NCBI RefSeq assembly: GCF_001194135.2
Contig: NC_068987.1
Location: 104,228,288-104,292,287, forward strand
Direction of reading: 5' to 3'
Source of the DNA: Octopus bimaculoides
Taxonomy: Eukaryota
DNA: 64,000 nt
The notes beneath the pieces are model-generated. The model saw nothing but the letters and a program-made list of their open reading frames with translations. It had not been told where the DNA came from and ran no database searches. This document shows, one piece after another, positions 3,427 to 48,599 of this stretch. Within the stretch, counting starts at the first letter, position 1; each line of letters starts with the position of its first letter. Position numbers and translations under genes: made by a program.

Positions 3427-3487
3427 CTTGTTGTTCCTTGGAAAATGTTTGGTGAGAGTAAGGACTGGAAATTACAGTCCTTCTTAT
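3427..3487 (-). CDS. BRCA2: Possible further BRCA2 exon (HKKDCNFQSLLSPNIFQGTT in phase 1)
   Basis: Acceptor attttagttcag, donor AAG|GTAAAG, open in the required phase. No recognisable homology, and a second frame is also open. Confidence 0.4.
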
Positions 3488-3711
3488 CTGAACTAAAATC
3501 ATGGAACTCTAAAATAAACAAGTGCAGAAAATGACAAAGCAAAATAAAAAAAAAATAATCTGAAAGTTAGTAACAGATCAAAATGTTTGAAAGAAAAGTA
3601 GAAAGTTATTGATAAAATGTAAGAGAAAGAGGCTGTTTGTAAAATACTATATACTGTACAAACCAGAAATATTGAATATAAAAACATGAAAAAAAAAAAG
3701 TATTTTAATTT

Positions 3712-10860: not shown

Positions 10861-11272
10861 AGCATCTTATATATTTGATGATATAAGACGATCTTTTCTT
10901 CAAAAAATATGTCTCAAAAAATCACCTGGGGTACTAAATGTGAAATTGCTTTAAATATTGCATGCATTAATGCACTAACAAATTTTTTCTTGAATATGCA
11001 CATTGAGGTGCAACAAATATACTCACGCATCTTCAATGCCATCAAATATGGTAATTAGTCCACAATTACTGAAAAACATTGCTACATTTTTGAATAAAGA
11101 ATACTAAATGGCTGAACAAAGTATTTTAGGAGGTATTAATTTATCTGGCTGTCATTATATTCTGTTAACCTATGAATCTTACAGAAGCAATGTTCATTTT
11201 TTAACTTGCCTTCAACCATGTAAACACAATTGTAAATATTCACAACAACAATTAAAAAATGTATTTATTTAC

Positions 11273-11353
11273 GGATAGGATCTGTAACCACAGGAAGAAT
11301 TCTCTGCCGGTCTTCAGTTCCATGTGAAACGGAGGGTTTCCAGAGAGCAGAAT
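11273..11353 (-). CDS. BRCA2: BRCA2 exon (NSALWKPSVSHGTEDRQRILPVVTDPI)
   Basis: Acceptor aaatatttcag, donor C|GTAAAT, 81 nt, phase 1-1, open. GTEDRQR..DPI resembles human GTIKDRR..LEPI, which follows the BRC region. Confidence 0.75.
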
Positions 11354-11458
11354 CTGAAATATTTGCATTACATTACTAACTTGTATAATTTGATAAATAA
11401 AACCAACAAAAATCACAAAAATTTAAATAATTATTCAAAACATAGATGTACAATAATA

Positions 11459-15000: not shown

Positions 15001-15535
15001 ATCTAAAGCAACATTTTTTCATGCACACTTAATATACTATTTTGGATTCCCAATTTACTAATTTGTTTGCTTGGACCCCAAAAATACATGGACTCCAAAG
15101 TTGACCCTCACCCCAAATCTTATATGGACCTCAAGGGGTCATGTGGACCCCCAGTTGAGAACCACTGTGGTAATTGGAAACTGAAATAACCTTTTGTGTG
15201 TGTCTGTCTATCTACATACATATAAATGTGTGTGTGTGTGTGTGTGTNNNNNNNNNNNNNNNNNNNNNNNNNNNNNNNNNNNNNNNNNNNNNNNNNNNNN
15301 NNNNNNNNNNNNNNNNNNNNCCATAACTTAGCAGCTTGATAATAAGAGACTGAGAGAATAAGTACCAGGCTTTGAAAAAAAAAAATAAGCACTGGGACGA
15401 TTTGTTTGACGAAACCCTTCAAGGCAGTGCTGAGCATGGCTGTAGTCCAATGACTGAAACAAGTAAAAGATAAATATATAATTTTAAGGTAAATGTAGAA
15501 CAAAAATATAAACTGAAATGAAGATATACACTTAC

Positions 15536-18500
15536 TTGTTTTACTGTTTAACTTTAAAAGTTTTTGGTTTTCCTGTTGCAAATTTTCAAATATACTTGGA
15601 TATGGTGGGTCAATCTCATTTTTTTCACTAGCATCGGTAGAATTTCTCTCGATTCCAGACTGGTTTGGTTTTACTGATGATATATGACTCTGTAACATTT
15701 CATGCTCTAATACTTTACTTGCAGAATTCTCTTCATTATTGTTCTTCGAGAGAATCTGTTTTGCACATTTGATAGAATTCTCTGAAACAGTAACATTTTT
15801 ACCTAAAGCTGTTTGAAATGCTACAAAAGGCCCAGTTTTATTATTCTCTTCATTACAGTTCTTAGAGAAAATCTGTTTAGCACATTCGACAGACTTCTCT
15901 GAAACAGTAACATTTTTACCTAAAGCTGTTTGAAATGCTACAAAACATCCAGTTGTATTGTTGTGACAAGTGGAGATAGATTTCTCAGTTTCTTTTTGTT
16001 TAGAGATATGATCTTTTTCAAGAGCTCCTTGCCTTGTGTTATTTTTAATACAATAAAATTCCTTTTCCATCTTTTCAACTGCAGATGTCATAGCTTGTTC
16101 ATCTGAGATATCATCATTCATTTGGTTCTCAACAGGAATATCATCAACATGCTGTATTTGCTTATTGGTATTATGAAGTTTTATCTCATGTATAGGGGAT
16201 GAAGTATTAACTGCTGATCTTAAAGGTTGGTTTTCATATATTTCCATTGATTGTGCTAATATATCATCAGAAATTTCAGAATTTTTTGATATTATGTTCT
16301 CACAATCCTCTTCTTTTTCATTATGAATGGATACTGATTTCGAATTTTCAGAAGAGCACTTAGATCTTTTGCAAACTGAGGTAGAGTTTTCATCAGATAT
16401 TTCTGAAAAGTTTCTTTTTTTACTATCAGATGTTTCAATTGGATCAAAAGTAGTATCTTCTGAAAAAATTTTCTGAAGCTCATCTAACAATTGGTCACAT
16501 TGTTCTGGAATTTCTTCATTTGAGGAAATCATTGATTTCTCTTTCACTAAATCTGACAAAGTGTTACTGACAGATGTCATTGCAGCTATTCTAACTTCAG
16601 AAGAGTTTAAATCAGTAAACAAAAGATCATTTACTACATTTTTCTCAAGAGATTGTTTTATTTCAATCACTGACTTTTCATTTAATATATTTTCTGCTTT
16701 CAAATTAGAATGAGAGTTGACAAGTAATTGTGGCCCATCCTTATTACAAAGCTTTCTATCAGATGCTGAGGTAGAAGATACTGTCATGTTTGAAGATAAA
16801 AATTCATGAGTCTCAAGGCCTGTTGTACCTGGTCTAACAAATTCATTTTCACCTGCCAATAATGCTTGGGTTTTTGTGTCTTTTTCATCACCAATTATCT
16901 TAAAGCCATCAGATGGGGAATTTTGAATATTTTCTTCTAACTGTTCATTTCTTATTGTGGTAGACACTCTTAAATGACCATCACCTTCAGTTTTACCATC
17001 ATCTATAGCTTCAGCTACAGTTATATAATTTTTTATTTCTATAAGATTATCCCCCAACTTTCTTTCATTACTGATATTTTGTTCCTTTGTTTCATTATAT
17101 ATATTTTTCTCTGTTAAATTAATCAATGGAATAGTACTTTTCAATTCATATTTACCACTAGCTGCATTTTCAATTATGTCCTCTGAACTTTGGTTTTTAA
17201 GAAGAGAATCAGTACTAGGTTTCTTTTCATCACACAATACATGGCAGTCTTTATCATTGAGCTCAACATTCTTAATAGTATTGTTACTGAATTTATTTTG
17301 AAGTAGTACAGGTTTATTATTTATTCTTGGAGATTTAAATGGACAAAATCTTTTTGGCAATTGTTTGTCAGAATAAGATTTTATTGGAAGTTTTCTTTTA
17401 AGACTTCTACTTTCTTCAAATTTCTTTTTCTTCATATTCTGCATATCCCTAACCAATTCAATAGATTCTAAGTCACTGTTTTTTATAGAATTTAATGCTT
17501 CAGAAAATAAAGCAGATTTTAGATACTGTGTATTGTCAGTGATGTAGTGTTCAGCCTTCTTGAAGTTTTGTTCATTTATTTGAATTTTTTGCATTTTAGC
17601 TGTAGAAAATCCTTGAAATTCCTCAACAGTTCCATCACTCACATCCACTAAATCCTGTGCTTTTTGTAAGCTCTTTTCATTTATTTGAATCTTTTGCCCT
17701 TTAGCTGTAGAAAATCCTTGGAATTTCTCATCAATTCCATCATTCTCATTCTCTAAATTTTGTACTTTTTGTAAGGTCTTTTCGTTTACTTCAATCTTCT
17801 TCCCTTTAGCTGTAGAAAACCCTTGGAATTTCTCAACAGTTCCATCATTCTCATTCAATAAATTTTGTGCCTTTTGTAAGCTTTTTTGGTTTATCTGAAT
17901 CTTCTTCCCTTTAGCTGTAGAAAACCCTTGAAATTCCTCAATAGTTTCATCACAGTCACTCATTAAACTTTGTGGGTTTATCGGAATTTTTTGTCCTTTA
18001 GCTGTAGAAAAACCTTGGAATTTCTCAACAATTTCATCACTATCATTCAATAAATTTTGTGCTTTTTGTAAGCTTTTTTGGTTTATCTGAATCTTCTGCC
18101 CTCTTGCTGTAGAAAATCCTTGGAATTTCTCAACAGTTTCATCATTATCATACACTAAATTTTGTGCCTTCTCTAAACTTTTTTGGTTTAACTGAATCTT
18201 TTGCCCACTCCCTGTAGAAAACCCTTGGAATTTCTCAATAGTTTCGTCATTCTCTTTCACTAAATTCCATGCCTTTTGTAAGCTTTCTTTATTAATTTGA
18301 ATCTTCTGCACCTTGATATCTTGATCATTTCGTTCTACTGTTTCTAAGATCACTTCTCTCTGACCTGGTTGCTTATTGCTGTCAACTTGTATAATGTCTT
18401 TTGATAATTTAGTATTTGATTTATCATTATCACAGTGATAAGAAATTTCAGGTATATGCTGATATGGAATGGTAGTATCATTGAAACTCTCTGAGAAATC

Positions 18501-18884
18501 TTCTGATGATTGCCAATAGACGATTTGACTGGCTGTAAAGTGATCTTCAACAGAACTACTGAATCTATGAAAATCTTTGAACTGTTTAGAGTGGGAAGAA
18601 CCAAGACTAGTTGTTTCTGAAACATTTTCACATTGGTTTTCTTCACTAGATTTGTTTGTGGCAATGCCTGAAGAAAACCCAGCTTGCTTCTGGAGTAAGG
18701 AAGATTTATTTTTAGAAGATTGCAATGAATTATACCGAGATAATATGGGAACAGTCTTTTGGATTTTATCAGCTGTTATTTGCAGCATTGGTTTCTGTTT
18801 ATCACAAGTTACGGAAGCTATTTGTTGTTTGTTTTTAACATTATTAGAAGCAGGGAGATTGTCATCTAAATGAATTGGGATATT
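15536..18884 (-). CDS. BRCA2: BRCA2 BRC-repeat exon (exon-11 equivalent), 3349 nt, 9 BRC repeats
   Basis: Branch-point-like ctctaat plus acceptor cttttattctag (phase 0), 1116 open codons, donor CAA|GTAAGT (phase 1). Repeats FSTAKGKKIQINQKSLQKAQNLL and FQTALGKNVTVSEKSVECAKQIF fit the BRC consensus FxTASGKxVxVSxxSLxKAxxLF. An alternative phase-1 acceptor would start the exon at 18865. Confidence 0.93.
15735..15960 (-). repeat. Pair of BRC repeats, 117-nt period (FQTALGKNVTVSE...AKQIF/L)
   Basis: The 45-nt run gaaacagtaacatttttacctaaagctgtttgaaatgctacaaaa is identical at 15784 and 15901. Confidence 0.92.
17514..18335 (-). repeat. Tandem 105-nt (35-aa) BRC repeat array: 7 FxxA/G units plus one upstream half unit
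   Basis: FQGFST units start at 18230, 18125, 18020, 17933, 17828, 17723 and 17618. Spacing is 105 nt except one 87-nt unit. Confidence 0.95.
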
Positions 18885-24136: not shown

Positions 24137-24451
24137 NNNNNNNNNNNNNNNNNNNNNNNNNNNNNNNNNNNNNNNNNNNNNNNNNNNNNNNNNNNNNNNN
24201 NNNNNNNNNNNNNNNNNNNNNNNNNNNNNNNNNNNNNNNNNNNNNNNNNNNNNNNNNNNNNNNNNNNNNNNNNNNNNNNNNNNNNNNNNNNNNNNNNNNN
24301 NNNNNNNNNNNNNNNNNNNNNNNNNNNNNNNNNNNNNNNNNNNNNNNNNNNNNNNNNNNNNNNNNNNNCACACCTCTTAACCCTTATACCTTTGCATGTA
24401 CACACACATATGCAGAGAGACAGACACACACACACATACACAAGGTACCCA

Positions 24452-27444: not shown

Positions 27445-28016
27445 GAATATAACTACACATCCTTCCACACAGATGTTAACTTAGATTACATATTCTTTCA
27501 CACTGTTATTAACCTAGATTACACAATCTTCCACACTCTAATATAAACTTGGATAATACTACCTTGCATAGTGTTGTTGGTTTGAGCAGCACAACTTTCC
27601 TCAGCATTGTTGGTTTGGACATCAGCACAACTTTCTACAGAGTTCTTGGTTTCAACAGCACAAGGTTCCAATGAGGTGCTAGTTTGAATGGCAGCACTAT
27701 CTTCCAAAAGATTGTTAGTTTCAACAGCAGCACAACCTTCCACAATGTTGTTGACTGAGACAGCAACGAAACCTACCATGGGATTGTAAGTTTGGTCAGC
27801 AGCACAGCCTTCTGCAGTGTTCTTAGTTTGGACAACACAATCTTCCACAAAAATGTTAGGCTGGACAGCACAATTTTCCATAGTATTCTTCAACTGGACA
27901 GTATTACTCCCAGCAGTGTTCTTGGTTTGAAAAGCGCAGCCTCCAATAGAATTGTCGGTGTTCATAATACAATCTTCTACAGTTTTATTACTTTGGACAG
28001 CACTGTATTCTTCCAT
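27445..28016 (-). repeat. Degenerate 33/36-nt minisatellite (11-12 aa units, e.g. VEDCVVQTKNT, VEGCAAVETNNL)
   Basis: About 14 units in the ORF, followed by frameshifted copies with TAG (27514) and TAA (27481) 33 nt apart. Confidence 0.85.
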
Positions 28017-29389
28017 GTTATTGCTTTGGACAATATCATTTTTTACAGTATTGTGGGTTGCACTGTCTTCAGCAATGTTTTCTTTATTAACAGGTTTGAC
28101 AAGATCAGATTCAATCTTAGTAAATGGTTGGTTGAAGTTAAGTAGTGTAGTATTATTTAGTTTTGTATTGGAATCGGAGTAGTGCTTTTCTGTGGCATTA
28201 CTTGTGGAGAAATCTTGCATTTTGAAGGAAAATTTTACAAGAGGTGATGACTGATGGATCTGACTTGCAGTAGGATATGAAAAACGTTTAGCTTTTCCCT
28301 TTAATTTACTTTTCCTGCTTAAAGAAAGACTGGCTGTTGACTTAGGTTTCACTGTTACATTTGAGTCACAAGATACTGATAAATCTTTATGCTGCTTGCT
28401 TTCTATATTGTTACACACTGAATGACAGTTAATATTTCTACTTTCAGAAGACGTTTCAGAAACATCATCTACCAATTTAAATTCTGACAAATTTTTAACA
28501 GAATCAAATTGTTCAACATGTTTTTCTTGACTATGTATATCATTCAAACAATCTTTGACAATTTCTAAATTATTTTGAATGGAAGAATCATGTTGTTTTG
28601 ACTGAGGTTTCTCTGCATGTAATTCAATGCTGTGAGGTACATGGTTTTTGTCAATATCCAGATTCACAACAGTCTCAGACGCTTCACAAATCTTCATTGG
28701 ATCCTCTAATGCTTTTAAAGAATTTTTCTCACAGGCTGCAGATTCAAATGAAGAATTAAAATCTGAACTTTTGCAACAATTGACAACTTCTTTGTTGATT
28801 TTAAATTTATTTTCATCAGAAACTAAACTCGTTACAGATGGACTATGACCTACATTAGCCACAAGGGAATTATGATCTGGAGTTCGTCCATCTGATACTT
28901 GATTAAAGGAATGCATATCAGTTGACTGGCATAACAATGGATTTACTGGAACCAAATCATTCTTTGACTGATTTTTCTGTGGAATTGAAGAAGGTATGTC
29001 TGAGAAATGAACGCTCTTGTGCATTGAAGTCGGATGTTTATTTTTAATTAAAATAGAATGCAGTAGAGAATTGTCTTTGTTAATACTATCAACTGGAGGA
29101 GTCAACATGCTTGCCTTTTCAGATACATCAAAATTAGTAGTTGAGTAATTTTTAGAATCATCTTTATTAATAGCTTCAAATAATATTGGAGATGAAACTT
29201 CCATGGAATATTCTGAGATGTCAGTTGTAGTAAAGGTTTTGTCATTTTCATTCAACTCGGTATGGATTGTTGAAGACAATATAGCAGAATCTTCCAATTC
29301 AGATATGTCTCCATTTGGAGAAAATAAAGCACGGGCAAAAAATTTTGATTGAGTAATTTGTCCTGTGCTTTCGTCATCTTTACACTCAT
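27563..29389 (-). CDS. BRCA2: BRCA2 large low-complexity exon (DECKDDES...ARALFSP...); 3' end uncertain (27563 phase 1 or 27777 phase 0)
   Basis: Acceptor atttttcag, phase 1 matches the previous exon. About 600 open codons (ORF 27519-29297 extended upstream), S/N/K/D-rich like the BRCA2 disordered region. Candidate donors CAAG|GTAGTA (27563) and ATG|GTAGGT (27777). Confidence 0.8.
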
Positions 29390-29842
29390 CTGAAAAATAT
29401 GGATAATAAATAAGGAGTTAAATAACGCCAATAAATTCACTATAAAGTTTGAATGTATGCAATGACAATGATGACATCCAAAACCATTGCTATTAAACTT
29501 GTGATTAATAATAAAAAAAGTTAAGGTAGGAAAGGTGGCAGAATCATTTGCACACCAGGCTACATGTTTAGTGGCATTTTATCTGCCTTTACATTCCAAG
29601 TTCAAATTCTGCTGAGGTCGACTTTGTTTTTCATCCTGTTAAGATCAATAAAATAAGTACCAGTTGAGCACTGCAGTTGATGTAATTGAGTAGCACCCAC
29701 CCACAAACTTGCAGGCTTTGCACCAAAATTTGAAACGGATAAGAAAAGTAAAGCCTAATGAGAAAAACACAGGAACTTAATTTAAATAATATATACAAGA
29801 AACAAATTTAAATGTCTAAACAACTATTTTAAATATTTGTAC

Positions 29843-29985
29843 CTTCAGAACTGGTCTTAATATAACCAGGTGGAGTTGCCAAAGAGCTGGTCCAAGAATA
29901 AGTGGTTTCATCCAAGCTAATACCCAAACTGTTTTTGTTATTTGTTGTAGAAGTTGAGAAAAATTCATCTTCAGGCTGGTTGAAG
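29843..29985 (-). CDS. BRCA2: BRCA2 exon (SFNQPEDEFFSTSTTNNKNSLGISLDETTYSWTSSLATPPGYIKTSSE)
   Basis: Acceptor aatttcag, donor AAG|GTACAA, 143 nt, phase 2-1. SLGISLDETTYSWTSSLATPP matches human [20 protein letters not shown]. Confidence 0.92.
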
Positions 29986-30966
29986 CTGAAATTATTTACA
30001 GAACATAATAGCAATATTTATAACAGAATGCGTCATTCTAATATTACAGAACAGAAGCATTTTACTTTTTAATCACATTGCACTTGGTTCATGACTATTT
30101 GATAAATGTGAAGAATGAAAATCAGAGAAACAGTATTCATCATGATTCATTTTAACATCCACTTTTCCAGGCTTGCATGCATAGGTCGGATGGAGTTTAT
30201 TGAGGCAGACTTTTTATGGCTGGATGCTGTCCCTGTCACTAATCCTTACCTGTTTCCAAGCAAGGTAATGTTTCCCCATGACTGGACATGTTTCCACATA
30301 ATATTGGAAATGAATGACACCCATTTACAACCAACACACAATATTAAGACGTGACACACACACACACACGAGTTTCTTTCAGTTTCTGTCTAACAAATCC
30401 ATTCACGAGGCTTTGATTGGTCTAGAACTGAAGTAGACACTAGTCCAGGGCCACATAGTAGGACTGAACCTGAAACCATGTGGTTAGGAAGCAGAGTTCT
30501 TAACCACACACCCACCAATGTATACATCTGATTTCATTGTTGGTATAGGTTGGGTGGTTTGAGTCAGTTCTAATTCGAAGGACCATGTCTTATAACAGTT
30601 TTATATTTGGCTTGTGTGTGTATTTGTGTGTCCTTTTCTCTCCTAGTAGTGACCATGCATAATAGTTGTAGATGAGTGTCACCATCATACAATTCTGTAG
30701 AAACATGTCCAGACACGGAGAAATATCATCTTGCTGGGAAGCAGGTGAGGACTGGTGACAGGAATGGTATTCAGGCATAGAAATTCTGACAGAATGAATT
30801 CTATTTCAGCCCCTTGCAAGCATAGGAAAGTGGACATTAAAATAATAAATGATGATAATAATGATGATTACAGAGAATTTGATACATGTAGGAACTGAAT
30901 CCCAATAGAATGCAATTGTAAATTAAATCTCAATAAAAAAATTGAAAATGTAAATTTGGAAAATAC

Positions 30967-31090
30967 CTTTTGGAATGTAGACTTAGTGATGTAGAGCAGT
31001 GACTAGAGTCATTCTCAGACAAAATGGAATGTTCTTCAAAAATGTTCTGTTTATGAGATTTCTTCTTATTACCACAATATGGAGTTGATG
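30967..31090 (-). CDS. BRCA2: BRCA2 exon (ASTPYCGNKKKSHKQNIFEEHSILSENDSSHCSTSLSLHSK)
   Basis: Acceptor ttttttctcccttag, donor AAG|GTATTT, 124 nt, phase 1-2. The junction creates ASTP, as in human LASTP (T77). Confidence 0.8.
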
Positions 31091-31299
31091 CTAAGGGAGA
31101 AAAAATGCATTTATTCATATAATCAGGTGATAGTGGAATTAACATGTTAATTAATTATGTTTATGTATAAAAAAAATTTAAAAAAACATCAATAATGAGT
31201 ACTGTATTTAATGATATATAAGGGACATTTCTTTCCCCTCAAATCTCTTGAAAACTCAGCCCAGGTCTCATATGTGAAATTGGGCCAAAATTACATGCT

Positions 31300-35765: not shown

Positions 35766-37740
35766 CCTATATCTTTTATCTTTTACTTGGGCCATGGCCA
35801 CGCTGGGGAAATGCTTTGAATTGTTTAGTCAAACAAATCGACTCCAGTATGTGTTTTCTTTTAAGTCAGGTAATCATTCTATCGGTCTCTATTGTCGAAC
35901 TGTTAAGTTACAGGAATGTTAAATAAACCAATACCAGGTGGGGTGGAGCAAACACACACACACACACACACACATACGACAAATTCAATCACAAGGCATT
36001 GGTGAGTCTGAGGCTATAGTCAAAGACACTTGCCCAAGGTGCTGTGCAGCAGGATTGAACACGAAACCACATAGTTGCCAAACGAAATTCTTAACCACAC
36101 AACCATGATAGTCATTAATGGTTCCGCTAGGTTTAAGTTCCCTTTCTCTAGTTATGATACAAATATAAATTCATTAAGAATTTTTTGCCATATATCATTC
36201 AGTACTTTTACCACCTACCTGAATTATTTAAAGCAGCTATTTATCTACATTCCACATACTAAAAAAAAAAGGAAAAAAAAATTCACAATACAAATAATAT
36301 AGGAGTAGCACGTTTGATTGTCATTTCTTTTGTCCATATATTCAGCAGTTATGGTAGCTGTTAATCCTCATCAGCCAGAACACATTGCAGCCCTTTGGGA
36401 ATTTGCATTGTCATGTGAGATTATATAGCAGCTCTAAATAGGCAAACGATGTTTTAGTAATAAATACATATTTTGAAATGTGAAAAGAAACACAGAAAGA
36501 ATGTACAATCTCATTATCAGAAACAGAAATTAGTCCATTGCAACATATAGTATATTGGTGTGACCTATTTTCGAAAAGACTTGAAATTTGGGATTTAAAA
36601 ATACATTCACAGATTAATCTATTCAACTATATTGAAGAGAAAAGAATCTCTCTAATTAAGTTGACATCAGGTCAATAACCCACTGTTTAGTGTATTGTGA
36701 AAACATATGACATTGTGTCAGTTGAACATACATATGGAAATAACAATATGTTATTAACACAAGCAAAAAAGATACAGGTTTCAAATTCTCACACAAGGCC
36801 AGCAATTTAAGGGGGAGGGATAAGTTGATTACGTCGACCCCTGTGCGTAACTAGTACTTATTTTATGAACCCTGAAAGGATAAAAGGCAAAGTTGGTCGC
36901 AGCAGAATGTAAAGAGTTGGGAAAAATGCTGTTAAGAATTGTGTCCAACAAGTTAAAGATTCTATCAACTTGCCACCTTAGCCAAAAGAAATAATAAAAG
37001 AGAAAGTTTCTTTCTTATTCAACAAGATATCATGTTGTTGTATCATGTTTAGAGAAGCAAACAAAACAAAAAGTAGGAAGAATTTAAGAAACCAGAGTGA
37101 GGTAATGAAAATAAAAGAGATATTCAGTGTAAAGTTGTACCATTTCATATAACTGTTTGAAGTTTTGGTGCATGGCCAGAAGTTTTAGCGGGATGGGGAA
37201 AGTTGATTACATCAATCTCACTATTTTATCGCTGGTATTTTATTTTATCAACCTTGAAGAAAATGAAAGGCAAAGTTGACCCCAGTCAACAGAATGTAAC
37301 AGGTTAGAAGAAATACTACAAAGCATTTTGTCCCCCATTTTAATGATTTTGCAAGCTTGCTGCCTTATTATATCATAACTGCAACTGATATGTTGATTGC
37401 CCTTTAGGATTCCAACAAAGTAGGGAACCAAAATTAAAAATGAAATAAAGGCTGGTTTGTGTTTATATTCTTTGATGCAAGTTCAACAGTTGGTAACAAT
37501 GTCATTTATTTTTCAAATAATATATATCTAGAATTGCAATATTTAATACTTTTCTTTTTAAGATGATACATAAAAGTGCAATTTCATAGAAATTTTTATG
37601 GTAATTTTATATGGTCAAGTGACTACAGAGAGACTTTGCCATTGGTTAAATGCATTTTTTTTTAATTGATCAGCATGAATGAGAAAAATACAGCTCCCTG
37701 AGTACACTTAGATACAATTCATTTAATATCATACAATTAC

Positions 37741-37872
37741 CTTGAACAGGACTTCCAGTGAGGGTCAACAAGTCTGAGGTTTCATTGTTGAAAATAGTGG
37801 CATCGTTAGAAAGTACATTCTTCTCAAGTAATCTTTGCAGTGATAATTTTATAAACCAATTGGAAGCTGGTT
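37741..37872 (-). CDS. BRCA2: BRCA2 exon with PALB2-binding-like motif (EPASNWFIKLSLQRLLEKNVLSNDATIFNNETSDLLTLTGSPVQ)
   Basis: Acceptor ttttaatatttccag, donor AAG|GTAATT, 132 nt, phase 1-1, open. SNWFIKLS matches human LNWFEELS (W31/F32/L35). Confidence 0.85.
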
Positions 37873-40164
37873 CTGGAAATATTAAAAGAAATTAGTAGAT
37901 GTTAATAGAGCATTATACATGATATATTATCACCATCATCATCAAACATCCACTTTTCCAAGCTTGCATAGGTCAAACAGAGTTTATTTGAGGTAAATTT
38001 TCTTCTTGCCACTGACCATCACCTGTTTCTGGCCAAACATGTTCTTGTAGAATACTGGAAATGAATGACACTGCTTGAATGGCAAAGACACTCATTCCCT
38101 ATCATGTAATATCAGAACAAGCACGGACGGACGGATGGACACACGCATGACAAAACTTCTTCCAGTTTCTGTCTACCAAACCCACTTACAAGGCTTTGAT
38201 TGGCTTGGGGCTATAGTAGCAGAGACTAGCTGAAGGTGCTATGCAGGGCTGAACCAAGAACCAGGTGATTGGGAAGCAAACTTCTTACCACATAACCGTG
38301 CCTGCATATGTATATGAGTGTGCTGTTAAGTCAGACATGGCCAGGACCAATATACAAGATTGAGACACCAGTTATTACAGTATTTATCCAGAGACAACAT
38401 CTCTTATGGACTTGCTGTGACAAAAACACAATAAATATCAGAGAGACATGAAAATTCACAGCAGCAGCAGTGAGTGAGAATGCTAGATGCATTTCAGCCC
38501 TTTTCAACTTTTTGAATGGCAAGTATACTCACAGCTAGACAAGAAATAGAGAACAGCAGATAAAACATTCACTGATGTTGTGAATAACTACCTGGCTGGT
38601 TATAAGTTTGGTGTACACAATTGAGGCATTATTAAATTAAAATAGCCTTCTATGTATCATGCTTAATATATANNNNNNNNNNNNNNNNNNNNNNNNNNNN
38701 NNNNNNNNNNNNNNNNNNNNNNNNNNNNNNNNNNNNNNNNNNNNNNNNNNNNNNNNNNNNNNNNNNNNNNNNNNNNNNNNNNNNNNNNNNNNNNNNNNNN
38801 NNNNNNNNNNNNNNNNNNNNNNNNNNNNNNNNNNNNNNNNNNNNNNNNNNNNNNNNNNNNNNNNNNNNNNNNNNNNNNNNNNNNNNNNNNNNNNNNNNNN
38901 NNNNNNNNNNNNNNNNNNNNNNNNNNNNNNNNNNNNNNNNNNNNNNNNNNNNNNNNNNNNNNNNNNNNNNNNNNNNNNNNNNNNNNNNNNNNNNNNNNNN
39001 NNNNNNNNNNNNNNNNNNNNNNNNNNNNNNNNNNNNNNNNNNNNNNNNNNNNNNNNNNNNNNNNNNNNNNNNNNNNNNNNNNNNNNNNNNNNNNNNNNNN
39101 NNNNNNNNNNNNNNNNNNNNNNNNNNNNNNNNNNNNNNNNNNNNNNNNNNNNNNNNNNNNNNNNNNNNNNNNNNNNNNNNNNNNNNNNNNNNNNNNNNNN
39201 NNNNNNNNNNNNNNNNNNNNNNNNNNNNNNNNNNNNNNNNNNNNNNNNNNNNNNNNNNNNNNNNNNNNNNNNNNNNNNNNNNNNNNNNNNNNNNNNNNNN
39301 NNNNNNNNNNNNNNNNNNNNNNNNNNNNNNNNNNNNNNNNNNNNNNNNNNNNNNNNNNNNNNNNNNNNNNNNNNNNNNNNNNNNNNNNTGTGTATATGTT
39401 TGTATGTCTGTGTTTGTCCCCCACAACATCGCTTGACAACCGATGCTGGTGTGTTTACATCCCCGTAACTTAGCGGTTCGGCAAAAGAGACCGATAGAAT
39501 AAGTACTAGGCTTCCAAAGAATAAGTCCTGGGGTTAATTTGCTCGACTAAAGGCGGTGCTCCAGCATGGCCGCAGTCAAATGACTGAAACAAGTAAAAGA
39601 GTATGTAATGCACACAAGTTCATAAATGAAGTCTTCTTAGTTTAATTCCTTTTTCCTGATATGGCTTTACACATAGAGTAAAGCTATATGTGTATAGTGT
39701 TGCTGTAATCTGTAAATACATACACATTAGAGTTTTGTTGAATATTTCCTGTCTTTTTAACTATAAAAAAATATGACAACCTATTAGTAATTATACATCT
39801 TACTATATAAGAAAGAATGCTTTTTAAGATGCAAGCTTTTCTTTATCCCAAAGTGGTAATTACGAAGAGTAATGGTATCTGTCTGACATAAGTAATTTAT
39901 AAATAGCAGAATCTAAAGAAACTAGTTTAAGTCTGTGTCAGCTATCATATAGTGGATATAAACAGTTCAGAAGTGGAACACATTGGTTTGTTAGGAAGAT
40001 TAGGAAAAGTCTAATGTTTTGACAAGTACCAGTCATCAGAGAGTCATAAGTATTTTATATAGGTACAATATTGACTTTCTGTAGCTTTTGGTTACAAAGC
40101 CTTTCCAGAATACTGGTTTTTCCAAAGCAGGGGTGGTCACTTTGGTTGACACACTCTAAATTCT

Positions 40165-46265: not shown

Positions 46266-46655
46266 ATGTGTGTGTGTGTGTTACGGTCTCCTTGCCTTAA
46301 CATTGCATGATAGTCATAGACAAGTGTCACTGTCATGCAAGTGGTGTCCTTCATTTCCAATTTTTCATGAAAATATGTCAGTTTATAGGAAACTATTACC
46401 TTACATGGAAAAACAGGTAAGGGTTGGCAATGGGAAGGGCATCCCACTATAAAAGATCTGTCTGAAGAAAAGAAATTTCATCAGTCCCATGTGATCTTGG
46501 AAAATGGGATGTTAAAACAACGATGATGATGATTTTCTTTCCTCACATTTTTTTTTTTTCACTATAATCTGTTTTATGAGATTTTTTGACAGTATTGGAA
46601 AAAAAAAAAGCTATTCATCAGATTTCTTTGTTACTGAATAAACAAATGCTCTTAC

Positions 46656-46770
46656 CAGAAAGATTTTTTAGTTTATTAAGAACCTTCTGTCTCTTCAGCT
46701 GTATAGCATCAGGTTTTAGATTCTTAACTGCATATATTTGAGGTTCACAGATACAGCCACAAGAACTCAT
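46656..46770 (-). CDS. BRCA2: BRCA2 first coding exon (MSSCGCICEPQIYAVKNLKPDAIQLKRQKVLNKLKNLS+G); exon incl. 5'UTR spans 46656-46786
   Basis: Acceptor tatttttatttcag ends at 46787, 16 nt UTR, ATG at 46770, 38 open codons +1 nt, donor TG|GTAAGA. Phase 1 joins the next exon, like the short phase-1 first coding exon of human BRCA2. Sequence similarity itself is weak. Confidence 0.7.
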
Positions 46771-48599
46771 TGTGGGCTAAAGAACCCTGAAATAAAAATA
46801 TGGTTATTACACTCTAATTAAACATCAGAACAATGTAAGAAAAAGATTAATTTTTATTCAGGCAGCCTGAGTTCAATTCCAATAACTAACTTTCAGCTTT
46901 GAACCTGGTGTCTGGAACCCAAATTGACAAAAGCTTCTTTCGTAAACTTATGATAGAAGGTCTAAATTTAAATATGAACATTTTAAAATGGAAAGTTTTG
47001 TATCAAGGCTGAAAGGAAAGTGTCAAGTGGACTGATATTAAGTACCAAAAGATATTTCCACTTTTTCAACTGAGAGCACAGAGTAGTGGGGCAGATGAGC
47101 TTCAGTATGTGAGAGTTAAAACAAAATTAAACTAAAATTCACATAGGCTCACATAATTAGAATCATGAGGGCATTAGAAAAATTGTTTTGCAGCATCTGA
47201 TTCAATTTTTTACATTCTGAGTTTAAATCCTGTTGAGATCAACTATACTTTTCATCTTTTTGGGGTTAATAAAATAAAGTAACAGTCAAGTTACTGGGGT
47301 TAATATAATTGACTAACCCTTCCCTCTAAACTTGTTGAACTTCTACCAAAATTTGAAACCATTATATCATTCTTATTTTACAGACCCTCCAAAAAATGAG
47401 GTTGACTTTACCTTTCGTCATTTTGAATAAAATAAGTACCTGGCAAGCACTGGGGTTGATGTAATCAAATAGACCCCCTCCCTCCAAAATTTCAGGCCTT
47501 GTGCTTTTGTAGAAAAGATAATTATTATCATTAGTAGTAGTATTTTCATATACTACTCTGACTTAGTCACTGGCACACTATCCACACCCCACATCACCTG
47601 TGCTGCCATTGTTCACCTTCCTTTCACAATCCTGTTTTCTCCTGCAAACTCTCTTCGTGTTCACCATTTGGTTCTATCTCCATCCCTATCCATCAGCCAC
47701 TCTCTTTTTGTATTCCCACGAACTTACTTACCACTCCTCTTATATCCACTTTCCCTTAAACTGAGGGTACACTCTGATACATCTTCACTGTCTTCTCTCA
47801 TTTTCCAACTGGCATAGCCATGTTACACCTCTCCCGCAAGACACCAGGTTTGATCCCTCTAGCATATGATAACCTTTCATCACTTGGTATAAATCCATCT
47901 CCCTCGATACTAAACCCCACTCAGTTGAGGGGGTCTTCTCTTGAGAGTTCTTTTGTGACCTTACTAGTGTCAGTATCATGTAGAAAGCATCCAGTACACT
48001 CTGTAAAATGGTTGGTATTAGGAAGGGCATACAGTTATAAAAATGATATCAAGACAGATACTGGAGCTTGTTGCATTCCTCTGATTTGTTGGTTACCATC
48101 AAACCGTCCAGCCCAAGCCAGCATAGAAATCGGACGTTAAATGGTAATGATGATGATGATGAAATGTTGTTGACAATGGTCAAGAAAGTCCTGTTGCAGT
48201 TTCGAGAAGTGAGCTGGCATTTGACACTTATCTACTGCAGGCAATCACTTCAAATCTCTTTTGGAGCATTTGAATAGCCTGCAGTAGGTAAGCTGATGTT
48301 TGATACATAATATGGAAACTGTTAACATTGAAAAAAAAAAAAAAAAAAAAAATCAGCCAATGCTTTAATATATATATTTTTTTATAAATGGAAACACGAA
48401 AAAACGCCTGGAATTTTACGCAAGAACCCCCACCAAAAGGGAGGAGGTATAGCAAATGGATCCTATGAAATCAATTCTAAAGAAAATTATTTTTCTGGAT
48501 AATATTGTCCTTAAGATCTAGGATTTACAATATGTAATCTGGAGCGTCCCTATTTTAAGGTATAGATTAGAAATTAGATGGGTTTGGTTAGGAATATTT

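Follow-up and report, generated by a model that had tools for sequence, protein, structure and literature searches.

Do the 105-nt repeats on the minus strand of this Octopus bimaculoides locus represent a young and homogenised expansion of BRC repeats in BRCA2, as proposed by the first-pass annotation, or an old feature of the gene in which single units come and go? The question matters as number and spacing of BRC repeats determine how many RAD51 molecules are carried per BRCA2, and the reason why species retain many repeats is still debated. Mice are reported to be viable with a single BRC repeat (PMC12803100), while RAD51 focus formation in Trypanosoma brucei scales with repeat number (PMC3553974). 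Our literature search found nothing on the BRC repeats of octopus BRCA2. All positions refer to the window, i.e., the whole stretch of 64,000 nt that was analysed, unless denoted otherwise.

The locus is a genuine BRCA2 gene of O. bimaculoides and is already annotated as BRCA2. An open minus-strand frame (15120..18884) encloses the large central exon, which is delimited by an acceptor AG at 18886-18885 and a donor GTAAGT at 15535-15530. In good accordance with these splice sites, the BRCA2 proteins of O. vulgaris and O. sinensis align by tblastn along 18884-15537 and then jump to the next exons. The exon matches the Pfam family PF00634 with E=5.8e-43 (cut-off 20.3 bits). The second large exon lies upstream in an open frame at 27519-29417, and exons encoding the helical and OB1 domains were identified downstream of the window (Table 1). 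The OB2 and OB3 families are also present in the BRCA2 proteins of O. sinensis and O. bimaculoides. Named matches comprise 'breast cancer type 2 susceptibility protein [Octopus bimaculoides]' and 'breast cancer type 2 susceptibility protein-like isoform X4 [Octopus sinensis]'; the O. vulgaris protein CAI9725761.1 bears the UniRef name 'Breast cancer type 2 susceptibility protein-like'. The original assignment of the repeats to the BRC family within BRCA2 is confirmed by the profile match, the downstream domains and the names of the orthologues. Orthologues were obtained by a representative search and a region-restricted homologue search; neither recovered an orthologue from squid, cuttlefish, Nautilus or any other named mollusc.

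Table 1. Positions of BRCA2 exons and BRC units (window coordinates; entries starting with C7 lie outside the window)
Feature	Sequence	Position	Strand	Remarks
Large central BRCA2 exon		15536..18884	(-)	3349 nt; counterpart of human exon 11; houses every BRC repeat found in the gene
Unit 0 (half unit)	TVERNDQDIKVQKIQINKESLQKAWNLVKENDETI	18237..18341	(-)	helix half of a BRC repeat, without FxxA
Unit 1	EKFQGFSTGSGQKIQLNQKSLEKAQNLVYDNDETV	18132..18236	(-)	PF00634 28.3 bits; FSTG at the FxxA position
Unit 2	EKFQGFSTARGQKIQINQKSLQKAQNLLNDSDEIV	18027..18131	(-)	PF00634 34.6 bits; with O. vulgaris units 2-4 in the unit tree
Unit 3	EKFQGFSTAKGQKIPINPQSL/MSDCDETI	17940..18026	(-)	87 nt; FxxA intact; deletion removes one half of the helix together with the LFDE-type position
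Unit 4	EEFQGFSTAKGKKIQINQKSLQKAQNLLNENDGTV	17835..17939	(-)	PF00634 36.9 bits; most canonical unit; 91% identity to O. vulgaris unit 6
Unit 5	EKFQGFSTAKGKKIEVNEKTLQKVQNLENENDGID	17730..17834	(-)	PF00634 22.1 bits; with O. vulgaris unit 8 in the tree
Unit 6	EKFQGFSTAKGQKIQINEKSLQKAQDLVDVSDGTV	17625..17729	(-)	PF00634 26.4 bits; 94% identity to O. vulgaris unit 11
Unit 7	EEFQGFSTAKMQKIQINEQNFKKAEHYITDNTQYL	17520..17624	(-)	degenerate terminal unit; FxxA intact, remainder diverged
Distal BRC pair (other sequence type)	FVAFQTALGKNVTVSEKSVECAKQIF	15726..15959	(-)	117-nt period; TRF 2.0 copies, 89% matches
Upstream large BRCA2 exon		27558..29390	(-)	614 aa aligned; 90% identity to O. vulgaris BRCA2 residues 283-896 (tblastn)
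Downstream small BRCA2 exon		3429..3512	(-)	tblastn with O. vulgaris, O. sinensis and O. bimaculoides proteins, 83-96% identity
Second small BRCA2 exon		11271-11357		tblastn
PF09169 (helical domain) exons		C7:104222546-743, 104215609-746, 104205203-271	(-)	beyond the window, downstream
PF09103 (OB1) exons		C7:104194212-319, 104191155-322, 104177757-840	(-)	beyond the window, downstream

Within the central exon, seven FQGFST(A/G) units follow each other head to tail and without spacers at a constant period of 35 aa. Their F codons are located at 18230, 18125, 18020, 17933, 17828, 17723, and 17618, which corresponds to spacings of 105, 105, 87, 105, 105, and 105 nt. Tandem Repeats Finder (TRF) detects arrays with a period of 105 nt (82-85% matches, scores 440-528), together with composite periods of 87, 192, and 297 nt. 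When units were scanned one by one, units 1, 2, 4, 5, and 6 exceeded the PF00634 gathering score (22-37 bits), and so did both units of the distal pair, which lies approximately 550 residues downstream of the array and yields the best scores of the exon (32.6 and 37.4 bits). Units 3 and 7 gave no PF00634 match when scanned singly. The half unit upstream of unit 1 (KVQKIQINKESLQKAWNLVKENDETI) reaches 14 bits and covers profile positions 12-29 only. A six-frame PF00634 search of the genome agrees with the unit-by-unit scan. A weak PF00634 match is located at C3:166661000 (20.6 bits, profile positions 3-17 only).

The FxxA motif reads FSTA in units 2-7, FSTG in unit 1 and FQTA in the distal units. 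Unit 1 is 94% identical to unit 1 of O. vulgaris, and FSTG is common to O. vulgaris and O. sinensis; thus, the exchange of A for G is old. The LFDE-type patch is more variable: it reads LLNE in unit 4 and LVYD, LLND, LENE, or LVDV elsewhere, is deleted in unit 3 and is unrecognisable in unit 7. Unit 3 shares 97% identity with O. vulgaris unit 5, which is full length (KISINPQSLQKAQSLMSDCDETI) and contains an additional QKAQSL. Therefore, the deletion in unit 3 comprises exactly QKAQSL and lies between two QSL repeats. Within O. bimaculoides several positions of this 18-nt gap score 72-73 matches, and its placement was taken from the O. vulgaris orthologue. At the two ends of the array, unit 0 is 86% identical to the O. 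vulgaris half unit, and unit 7 is 89% identical to the last O. vulgaris unit and has a recognisable counterpart at the end of the Argonauta array. The layout described by the first-pass annotation is thereby reproduced throughout, including the spacer-less series of seven units, the 87-nt unit lacking part of the helix residues, the single A-to-G change in FxxA and the upstream half unit without this motif.

The degree of similarity among the units is a different matter. Units 1-6 reveal pairwise DNA identities of 75-90%, i.e., they differ at 10-25% of positions; identities between unit 7 and the remaining units amount to 61-68%. At the protein level the mean identity between units amounts to 69%, and octopus arrays in general average 69-71% in hand-made alignments. 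Between-unit dS ranges from 0.24 to 0.78 and dN/dS from 0.17 to 0.67, with a pooled pS of 0.30; the lowest pN (0.037) is found for the EKFQGFSTA module. The array units are only moderately similar and are not homogenised. The long identical DNA runs that had been emphasised before do exist, the longest exact runs common to two units measuring 14-34 nt, but a description of the units as near-identical or homogenised is overstated in view of their divergence.

The same contiguous, spacer-less 35-aa array recurs in O. vulgaris, O. sinensis, and a distantly related octopod, Argonauta hians, which also has four units of the distal type. As had been anticipated, the number of units differs: seven in the present assembly of O. 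bimaculoides, 11 in O. sinensis, 12 in O. vulgaris, and approximately 10 in Argonauta hians, where the counts of the other species are drawn from predicted proteins of single assemblies and units were compared between species at the protein level. Units 0, 1, 3, 4, 6, and 7 have collinear orthologues in O. vulgaris with 86-97% identity, compared to 49-80% for the best paralogue, and the flanking exon sequence is about 90% identical between the two species. In a tree of the units of three Octopus species, built from 35-residue sequences and without support values, units cluster by position and not by species, which lends no support to concerted evolution of the array. Since the array also occurs in O. 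sinensis and Argonauta hians, it is old and not a recent expansion, and its head-to-tail 35-aa arrangement appears to be an old octopod feature. O. bimaculoides has the smallest count and therefore looks contracted or under-assembled rather than expanded. Turnover of units is evident even at short distance. Despite 99% identity in the flank, O. vulgaris and O. sinensis differ at three unit positions. A few pairs look recent, namely O. vulgaris units 3/4 (94%), O. sinensis units 5/6 (94%), and Argonauta units 8/9 (83%).

We consider it very probable that the locus represents the BRC region of O. bimaculoides BRCA2, in which an old octopod array has evolved by birth and death of whole units, followed by independent divergence of the survivors. 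Whole 105-bp units would be born and lost by unequal crossover or replication slippage between units with common identical runs of 14-34 nt, and the remaining units would then diverge independently under purifying selection. Such birth and death would result in different sets of units per species and in internally damaged units, e.g., the 87-nt unit 3. Unequal crossover, as suggested before, or slippage is a natural explanation for the differences in count, while homogenisation finds no support in the divergence of the units. By analogy to human BRC4, a 35-residue unit would consist of an FxxA plug (FSTA), a short hairpin (KGQKI), and a helix with an LFDE-like patch at its end (SLQKAQNLLNE), and should grip one RAD51 monomer, or possibly DMC1. 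With one RAD51 per unit, several recombinase molecules should be bound along the array, ready to be loaded onto ssDNA. Not all seven units need be active, since units 3 and 7 fall below the Pfam threshold and unit 1 carries FxxG. An AlphaFold2 model of the array alone had a mean pLDDT of 38.8 and showed no more than a periodic alternation of hairpin and helix; no conclusion was based on it.

The number of seven requires a closer look. It is conceivable, albeit on balance doubtful, that the array or its copy number stems from a collapsed or mis-joined repeat in a gap-rich assembly. The window holds 11 N runs, and an unplaced contig of 213 bp (C49664) with an open frame contains three consecutive pieces of array-type sequence: a unit tail ending in NLLINSDETV, a copy 97% DNA-identical to unit 5, and the start of a unit-6-like copy. 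The chromosomal unit preceding unit 5 matches its counterpart on this contig with an identity of just 82.5%; therefore, the unit junction of C49664 is absent from the chromosome. The missing unit type is known from O. vulgaris, O. sinensis, and a pseudogene fragment of the O. bimaculoides genome itself. Nevertheless, the array is free of gaps, with the closest N runs at 15248-15320 and 24137-24368, its units differ sufficiently from each other to be distinguishable, and the same architecture is seen in three independent assemblies of other species. Furthermore, a whole-genome DNA search gave C49664 as the sole extra piece besides the pseudogene. Taken together, gap-free sequence, distinct units and the three other assemblies indicate that the array is real and that only the number seven is doubtful. 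The count is uncertain because C49664 carries a junction missing from the gap-rich chromosome assembly, and seven may be a minimum or may represent just one of two haplotypes; in this one O. bimaculoides genome, the junction is compatible with a second haplotype as well as with a collapsed repeat.

A more far-reaching interpretation, which we regard as rather unlikely, holds that octopod BRCA2 contains two separately evolving BRC arrays, a spacer-less GFSTA type with fast turnover (7-12 units, differing even between sister species) and a small FQTA type (2-4 units). If true, the load of RAD51 or DMC1 per BRCA2 molecule would be tuned through the copy number of the first array, on which selection could act, and length alleles would segregate within species. 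The two arrays would split labour in the manner of human BRC1-4 and BRC5-8, which are said to divide labour. Tight arrays would moreover be the usual condition in metazoans, from which the spaced vertebrate layout departs.

Very little speaks for the recent, lineage-specific expansion originally proposed, in which gene conversion or unequal crossover would have kept the units near-identical as in T. brucei. The exact 105-nt phase, the identical runs of up to 34 nt and the few recent-looking pairs in O. vulgaris, O. sinensis and Argonauta would be consistent with such a history. The divergence of the units (75-90% DNA identity, pooled pS of 0.30) is however far from the less than one change per 132-bp repeat reported for T. 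brucei (PMC2408642), orthologous units are kept across Octopus species, Argonauta has the array as well, and O. bimaculoides has the fewest units. These findings largely refute a recent expansion. Least credible of all is a decaying or functionless low-complexity insert that leaves the RAD51 work to the distal pair. Such a view could draw on the top Pfam scores of the distal units, on the damage to units 3 and 7, and on reports that one repeat is enough for mouse viability (PMC12803100) and covers part of T. brucei BRCA2 function (PMC2408642). Against it, no unit interrupts the frame in any of the four species, dN/dS values stay below 1, the FxxA module being most constrained, and orthologous units reach 86-97% identity in species with exon flanks at about 90%.

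An old array with turnover of whole units thus remains the preferred reading. With naturally occurring arrays of 7, 11, and 12 units whose orthology can be traced, together with FxxG, helix-deletion and degenerate-end variants, the octopus array offers a convenient comparative system. Our findings leave the current understanding of BRCA2 unchanged, since the gene is already annotated and this mode of evolution is already known from Drosophila.

Comparison to known systems starts with human BRCA2. Unit 4 and human BRC4 (PDB 1n0w chain B) share the pattern GF-TA-GKK--I---SL-K--NL--E, with FSTA opposite FHTA and LLNE opposite LFDE, both in register. As in human BRCA2, a single large central exon accommodates the octopus repeats, and the helical and OB domains follow downstream. 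Human BRCA2 has eight repeats, with spacers between them that range from tens to hundreds of residues. In contrast, at least seven octopus repeats abut at 35 aa, and a separate distal pair of a second type is added.

The array of T. brucei BRCA2 is likewise arranged head to tail, ends in a degenerate unit and varies in repeat number between related genomes. It has a period of 44 aa, 14 of 15 units are identical, with less than one base change per repeat (PMC2408642; PMC3553974), and its absence from close relatives indicates a recent expansion (PMC2408642). The octopus array differs in its 35-aa period, its DNA identity of 75-90%, the conservation of unit orthologues and its occurrence across octopods. 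A closer parallel is provided by dmbrca2 of Drosophila, which varies from 3 to 11 repeats between close species and has 7, 9, or 11 repeats within D. pseudoobscura; contractions as well as expansions were explained by unequal crossing over (PMC2882388). The same mode of evolution would apply to the octopus array, given that number and composition of units differ in close relatives. Drosophila belongs to another phylum, however, and its BRCA2 is devoid of the canonical DNA-binding domain. Polymorphism within a species is observed directly in Drosophila, whereas the octopus hint consists of one unplaced contig.

T. brucei as the one tandem array named by the first-pass annotation is too narrow a reference. 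Surveying the longest tight run per database-predicted BRCA2 protein, we found 32 units of 33 aa in Owenia fusiformis, 22 of 33 aa in Macrosteles quadrilineatus, 17 of 33 aa in Carpediemonas membranifera, 16 of 41 aa in Hydra vulgaris, 15 of 37 aa in Dryococelus australis, 13 of about 36 aa in Trichomonas vaginalis, 13 of 38 aa in the sea urchin Lytechinus pictus, and 8 of 47 aa in Aphis gossypii. Tight arrays hence appear to be common among predicted BRCA2 proteins of invertebrates and protists. Truly homogenised arrays are predicted for Owenia, Hydra, Carpediemonas, and Aphis, with a mean identity of 87-92% (30-aa core) versus 69-71% in octopus. The occurrence of tight arrays across many phyla suggests that the statement of 2008, made in a study of T. 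brucei, that repeats elsewhere are dispersed and degenerate (PMC2408642) is out of date. With similar arrays in many other invertebrates, the octopus array adds a rather typical example to a known pattern.

The gene in the window is O. bimaculoides BRCA2, because a homologue search restricted to the region returned the 'breast cancer type 2 susceptibility protein [Octopus bimaculoides]', which carries the identical seven tandem BRC units; the gene is one already annotated as BRCA2. The first-pass annotation had recognized BRC repeats of BRCA2 here, and correctly so. The Pfam BRCA2 repeat profile PF00634 matches the translated central exon with E=5.8e-43, and a whole-genome search located exons that match the BRCA2 helical domain and OB1 downstream on the same strand and chromosome, 5 to 50 kb past the window edge. 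When scanned unit by unit, five of the seven tandem units (1, 2, 4, 5, and 6, numbered in gene direction) as well as both units of a distal pair exceed the curated cut-off singly; unit 3 (87 nt) and unit 7, the last of the array, fall below it. Aligned to human BRC4 (RAD51 complex 1n0w), unit 4 places FSTA opposite FHTA and LLNE opposite LFDE.

All seven units lie inside the central exon and open with EKFQGFST or EEFQGFST. The spacing that had been read from the sequence, 105 nt with one unit of 87 nt, is borne out by the F codons, which follow each other at 105, 105, 87, 105, 105, and 105 nt, and by Tandem Repeats Finder, which reports 105-nt arrays with 82-85% matches. Likewise present is the half unit upstream of unit 1, which retains the helix part, lacks FxxA, and aligns to the second half of the PF00634 profile only. 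Individual units deviate from the pattern: in unit 1 a G takes the place of the FxxA alanine, the second module is missing from unit 3, and the sequence of unit 7 is degenerate. Since the O. vulgaris counterpart of unit 3 is full length (…INPQSLQKAQSLMSDCDETI), the short unit has lost six codons between two QSL repeats. About 550 residues downstream of the tandem array lies a smaller one, a pair of BRC repeats of another type, FVAFQTALGKNVTVSE...KQIF; these outscore the tandem units against Pfam.

Features of the BRCA2 locus in the window
Feature	Position	Strand	Evidence or remark
Upstream exons	27558-29390, 29844-30002, 30963-31100, 37676-37873, 46636-46776	minus	64-91% identity to O. vulgaris
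Degenerate 36-nt (12-aa) repeat	27585-27752	minus	~5 copies, 70% matches
Open frame	18884 down to 15120	minus	frame scan of the window
Central BRC exon	18884 to 15536	minus	acceptor AG 18886-18885, donor GTAAGT 15535-15530
F codon starts, units 1-7	18230, 18125, 18020, 17933, 17828, 17723, 17618	minus	
Distal BRC pair	15726-15959	minus	117-nt period, 89% matches (Tandem Repeats Finder)
Small exon	11357-11271	minus	alignment of relatives' proteins
Small exon	3512-3429	minus	alignment of relatives' proteins

BRCA2 proteins of relatives align over 18884-15537, and their next matches are the two small exons. The stop-to-stop frame continues 416 nt beyond the donor into the intron (15120-15535), crossing a 73-base N run (15248-15320); a '1254-aa ORF' is therefore larger than the real exon. 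The database protein (2179 aa) begins at an internal Met within the BRC exon, near 18788, and the public O. bimaculoides BRCA2 model appears to lack about 900 N-terminal residues, although the upstream exons are present. The 12-aa repeat of the upstream large exon encodes motifs like N-T-x-E-x-C-A-V-Q-T-K-N and recurs in the proteins of O. vulgaris and O. sinensis.

Relatives were collected by an exhaustive profile-free search (O. vulgaris, 87% identity; Argonauta hians, 47%) and by a further search (O. sinensis). O. vulgaris has 12 units and the same half unit, with a 35-aa period throughout, O. sinensis has 11 units in a set unlike that of O. vulgaris, and A. hians has about 10, mostly of 35 aa with a few longer gaps, together with four repeats of the distal type. 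The array of O. bimaculoides, seven units and the half unit in this assembly, is the shortest, with nothing that corresponds to O. vulgaris units 3/4, 7, 9, and 10. A recent, lineage-specific expansion, as proposed at first, is not supported by this distribution: copy number does vary among octopods, but O. bimaculoides stands at its low end.

Nor are the units homogenised to the degree claimed. DNA identity amounts to 75-90% among units 1-6, 61-68% between unit 7 and the others, and 51-64% for the half unit, with a mean pairwise protein identity of 69%. Shared exact runs do exist, but the longest common to two units span only 14-34 nt. Full-unit pairs reveal a synonymous divergence of 0.24-0.78 and dN/dS of 0.17-0.67, the strongest constraint resting on the EKFQGFSTA module (pN 0.037 vs pS 0.30). 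For six of the eight units of O. bimaculoides (half unit counted), O. vulgaris has a collinear partner that is 86-97% identical; the best paralogue within the species reaches only 49-80%. When all units of the three Octopus species are placed in one tree, they group by position and not by species, the opposite of the outcome expected from homogenisation. Whole-unit gain and loss, in turn, is ongoing, since O. vulgaris and O. sinensis share 99% identity in the adjoining unique sequence and nonetheless have unlike arrays: O. sinensis has only one counterpart of the O. vulgaris units 3 and 4, has none of unit 5, and carries unit 7 in duplicate. We conclude that the array is an old octopod feature with turnover of units by birth and death, and that O. 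bimaculoides lies at the low end of its copy-number range.

To see whether seven is the true count, the DNA of the array was compared with the whole assembly. Eleven N runs lie in the window, and the assembly is therefore gap-rich; the array itself sits in gap-free sequence with distinct units, which rules it out as an assembly artefact. The search returned two further pieces. Contig C49664 (unplaced, 213 bp, open in frame) reads …KGQKIQINEKSLQKAQNLLINSDETV, EEFQGFSTAKGKKIKVNEKTLQKVQNLVNENDGID, EKFQGFSTA. It begins with the end of a '...NLLINSDETV' unit, continues with a copy of unit 5 (97% identical), and closes with 28 nt that equal the start of unit 6. The unit at its beginning shares only 82.5% identity with unit 4, the chromosomal neighbour before unit 5. 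The other piece, C7:13,298,294-13,298,624, lies on the BRCA2 chromosome 91 Mb away and comprises about three frameshifted BRC units, 81% identical to the array, within unrelated, repeat-like DNA; it is a dispersed pseudogene fragment. In O. vulgaris/O. sinensis numbering, the units belong to types 7, 7', and 8, and the fragment has the LINSDETV-EEFQGFST junction in common with C49664. The unit junction of C49664 is absent from the chromosome array. A unit type that the relatives also have is thus present in this animal's reads and missing from the chromosome sequence. This suggests either that one or more units distinguish the two haplotypes or that the array is collapsed to a slight extent.

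The function of the octopus units is deduced from the established interaction between human BRC4 and RAD51. By analogy, each intact unit would bind one RAD51 via the FxxA plug and the helix with its LFDE-like patch, and the array would concentrate RAD51, perhaps also DMC1, on BRCA2. The predicted fold of the array alone is uninformative (pLDDT 38.8). With their shared identical runs, the 105-bp units would readily lend themselves to unequal crossover or slippage, which fits both the differences in whole units from species to species and the deletion in unit 3, flanked as it is by short direct repeats. Units 1, 3, and 7 offer natural test cases, and the between-species series of 7, 11, and 12 units is a useful by-product, as is the hint that one unit is heterozygous or was not assembled.

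Start-to-start BRC spacing was measured in 168 proteins with a profile built from the hits. Tight runs are frequent in this set, which consists of database predictions and is biased by the query to repeat-rich proteins. Examples, each given with its longest tight run, are Owenia fusiformis (32 units, period 33 aa), Macrosteles quadrilineatus (22, 33 aa), Carpediemonas membranifera (17, 33 aa), Hydra vulgaris (16, 41 aa), Dryococelus australis (15, 37 aa), Lytechinus pictus (13, 38 aa), Trichomonas vaginalis (13, about 36 aa), and Aphis gossypii (8, 47 aa). Some of these predicted arrays are truly homogenised, at 87-92% identity. In the literature library searched, no paper treats as tandem arrays the very long and nearly identical tight runs predicted for BRCA2 of O. 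fusiformis, H. vulgaris, C. membranifera, Macrosteles, Dryococelus, and A. gossypii. As far as predicted proteins can tell, back-to-back BRC repeats are special neither to octopus nor to trypanosomes, and this breadth across phyla is itself of use. In an invertebrate BRCA2-like protein (ENA predictions P0001 and P0002), GF-TA-type repeats are dispersed and the FQTASGKNV type is expanded into a long array, the reverse of octopus, whose GF-TA type forms the tandem array. Different repeat types may have expanded in different lineages.

Among described systems, the repeat number of Drosophila ranges from 3 to 11 across species and is also polymorphic within species, a variation attributed to unequal crossing over (PMC2882388). 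In T. brucei, unit number varies from strain to strain (PMC2408642) and RAD51 focus formation scales with repeat number (PMC3553974). The array of T. brucei repeats every 44 aa and includes 14 identical units (PMC2408642), whereas that of octopus has a 35-aa period and units 1-6 that differ from one another.
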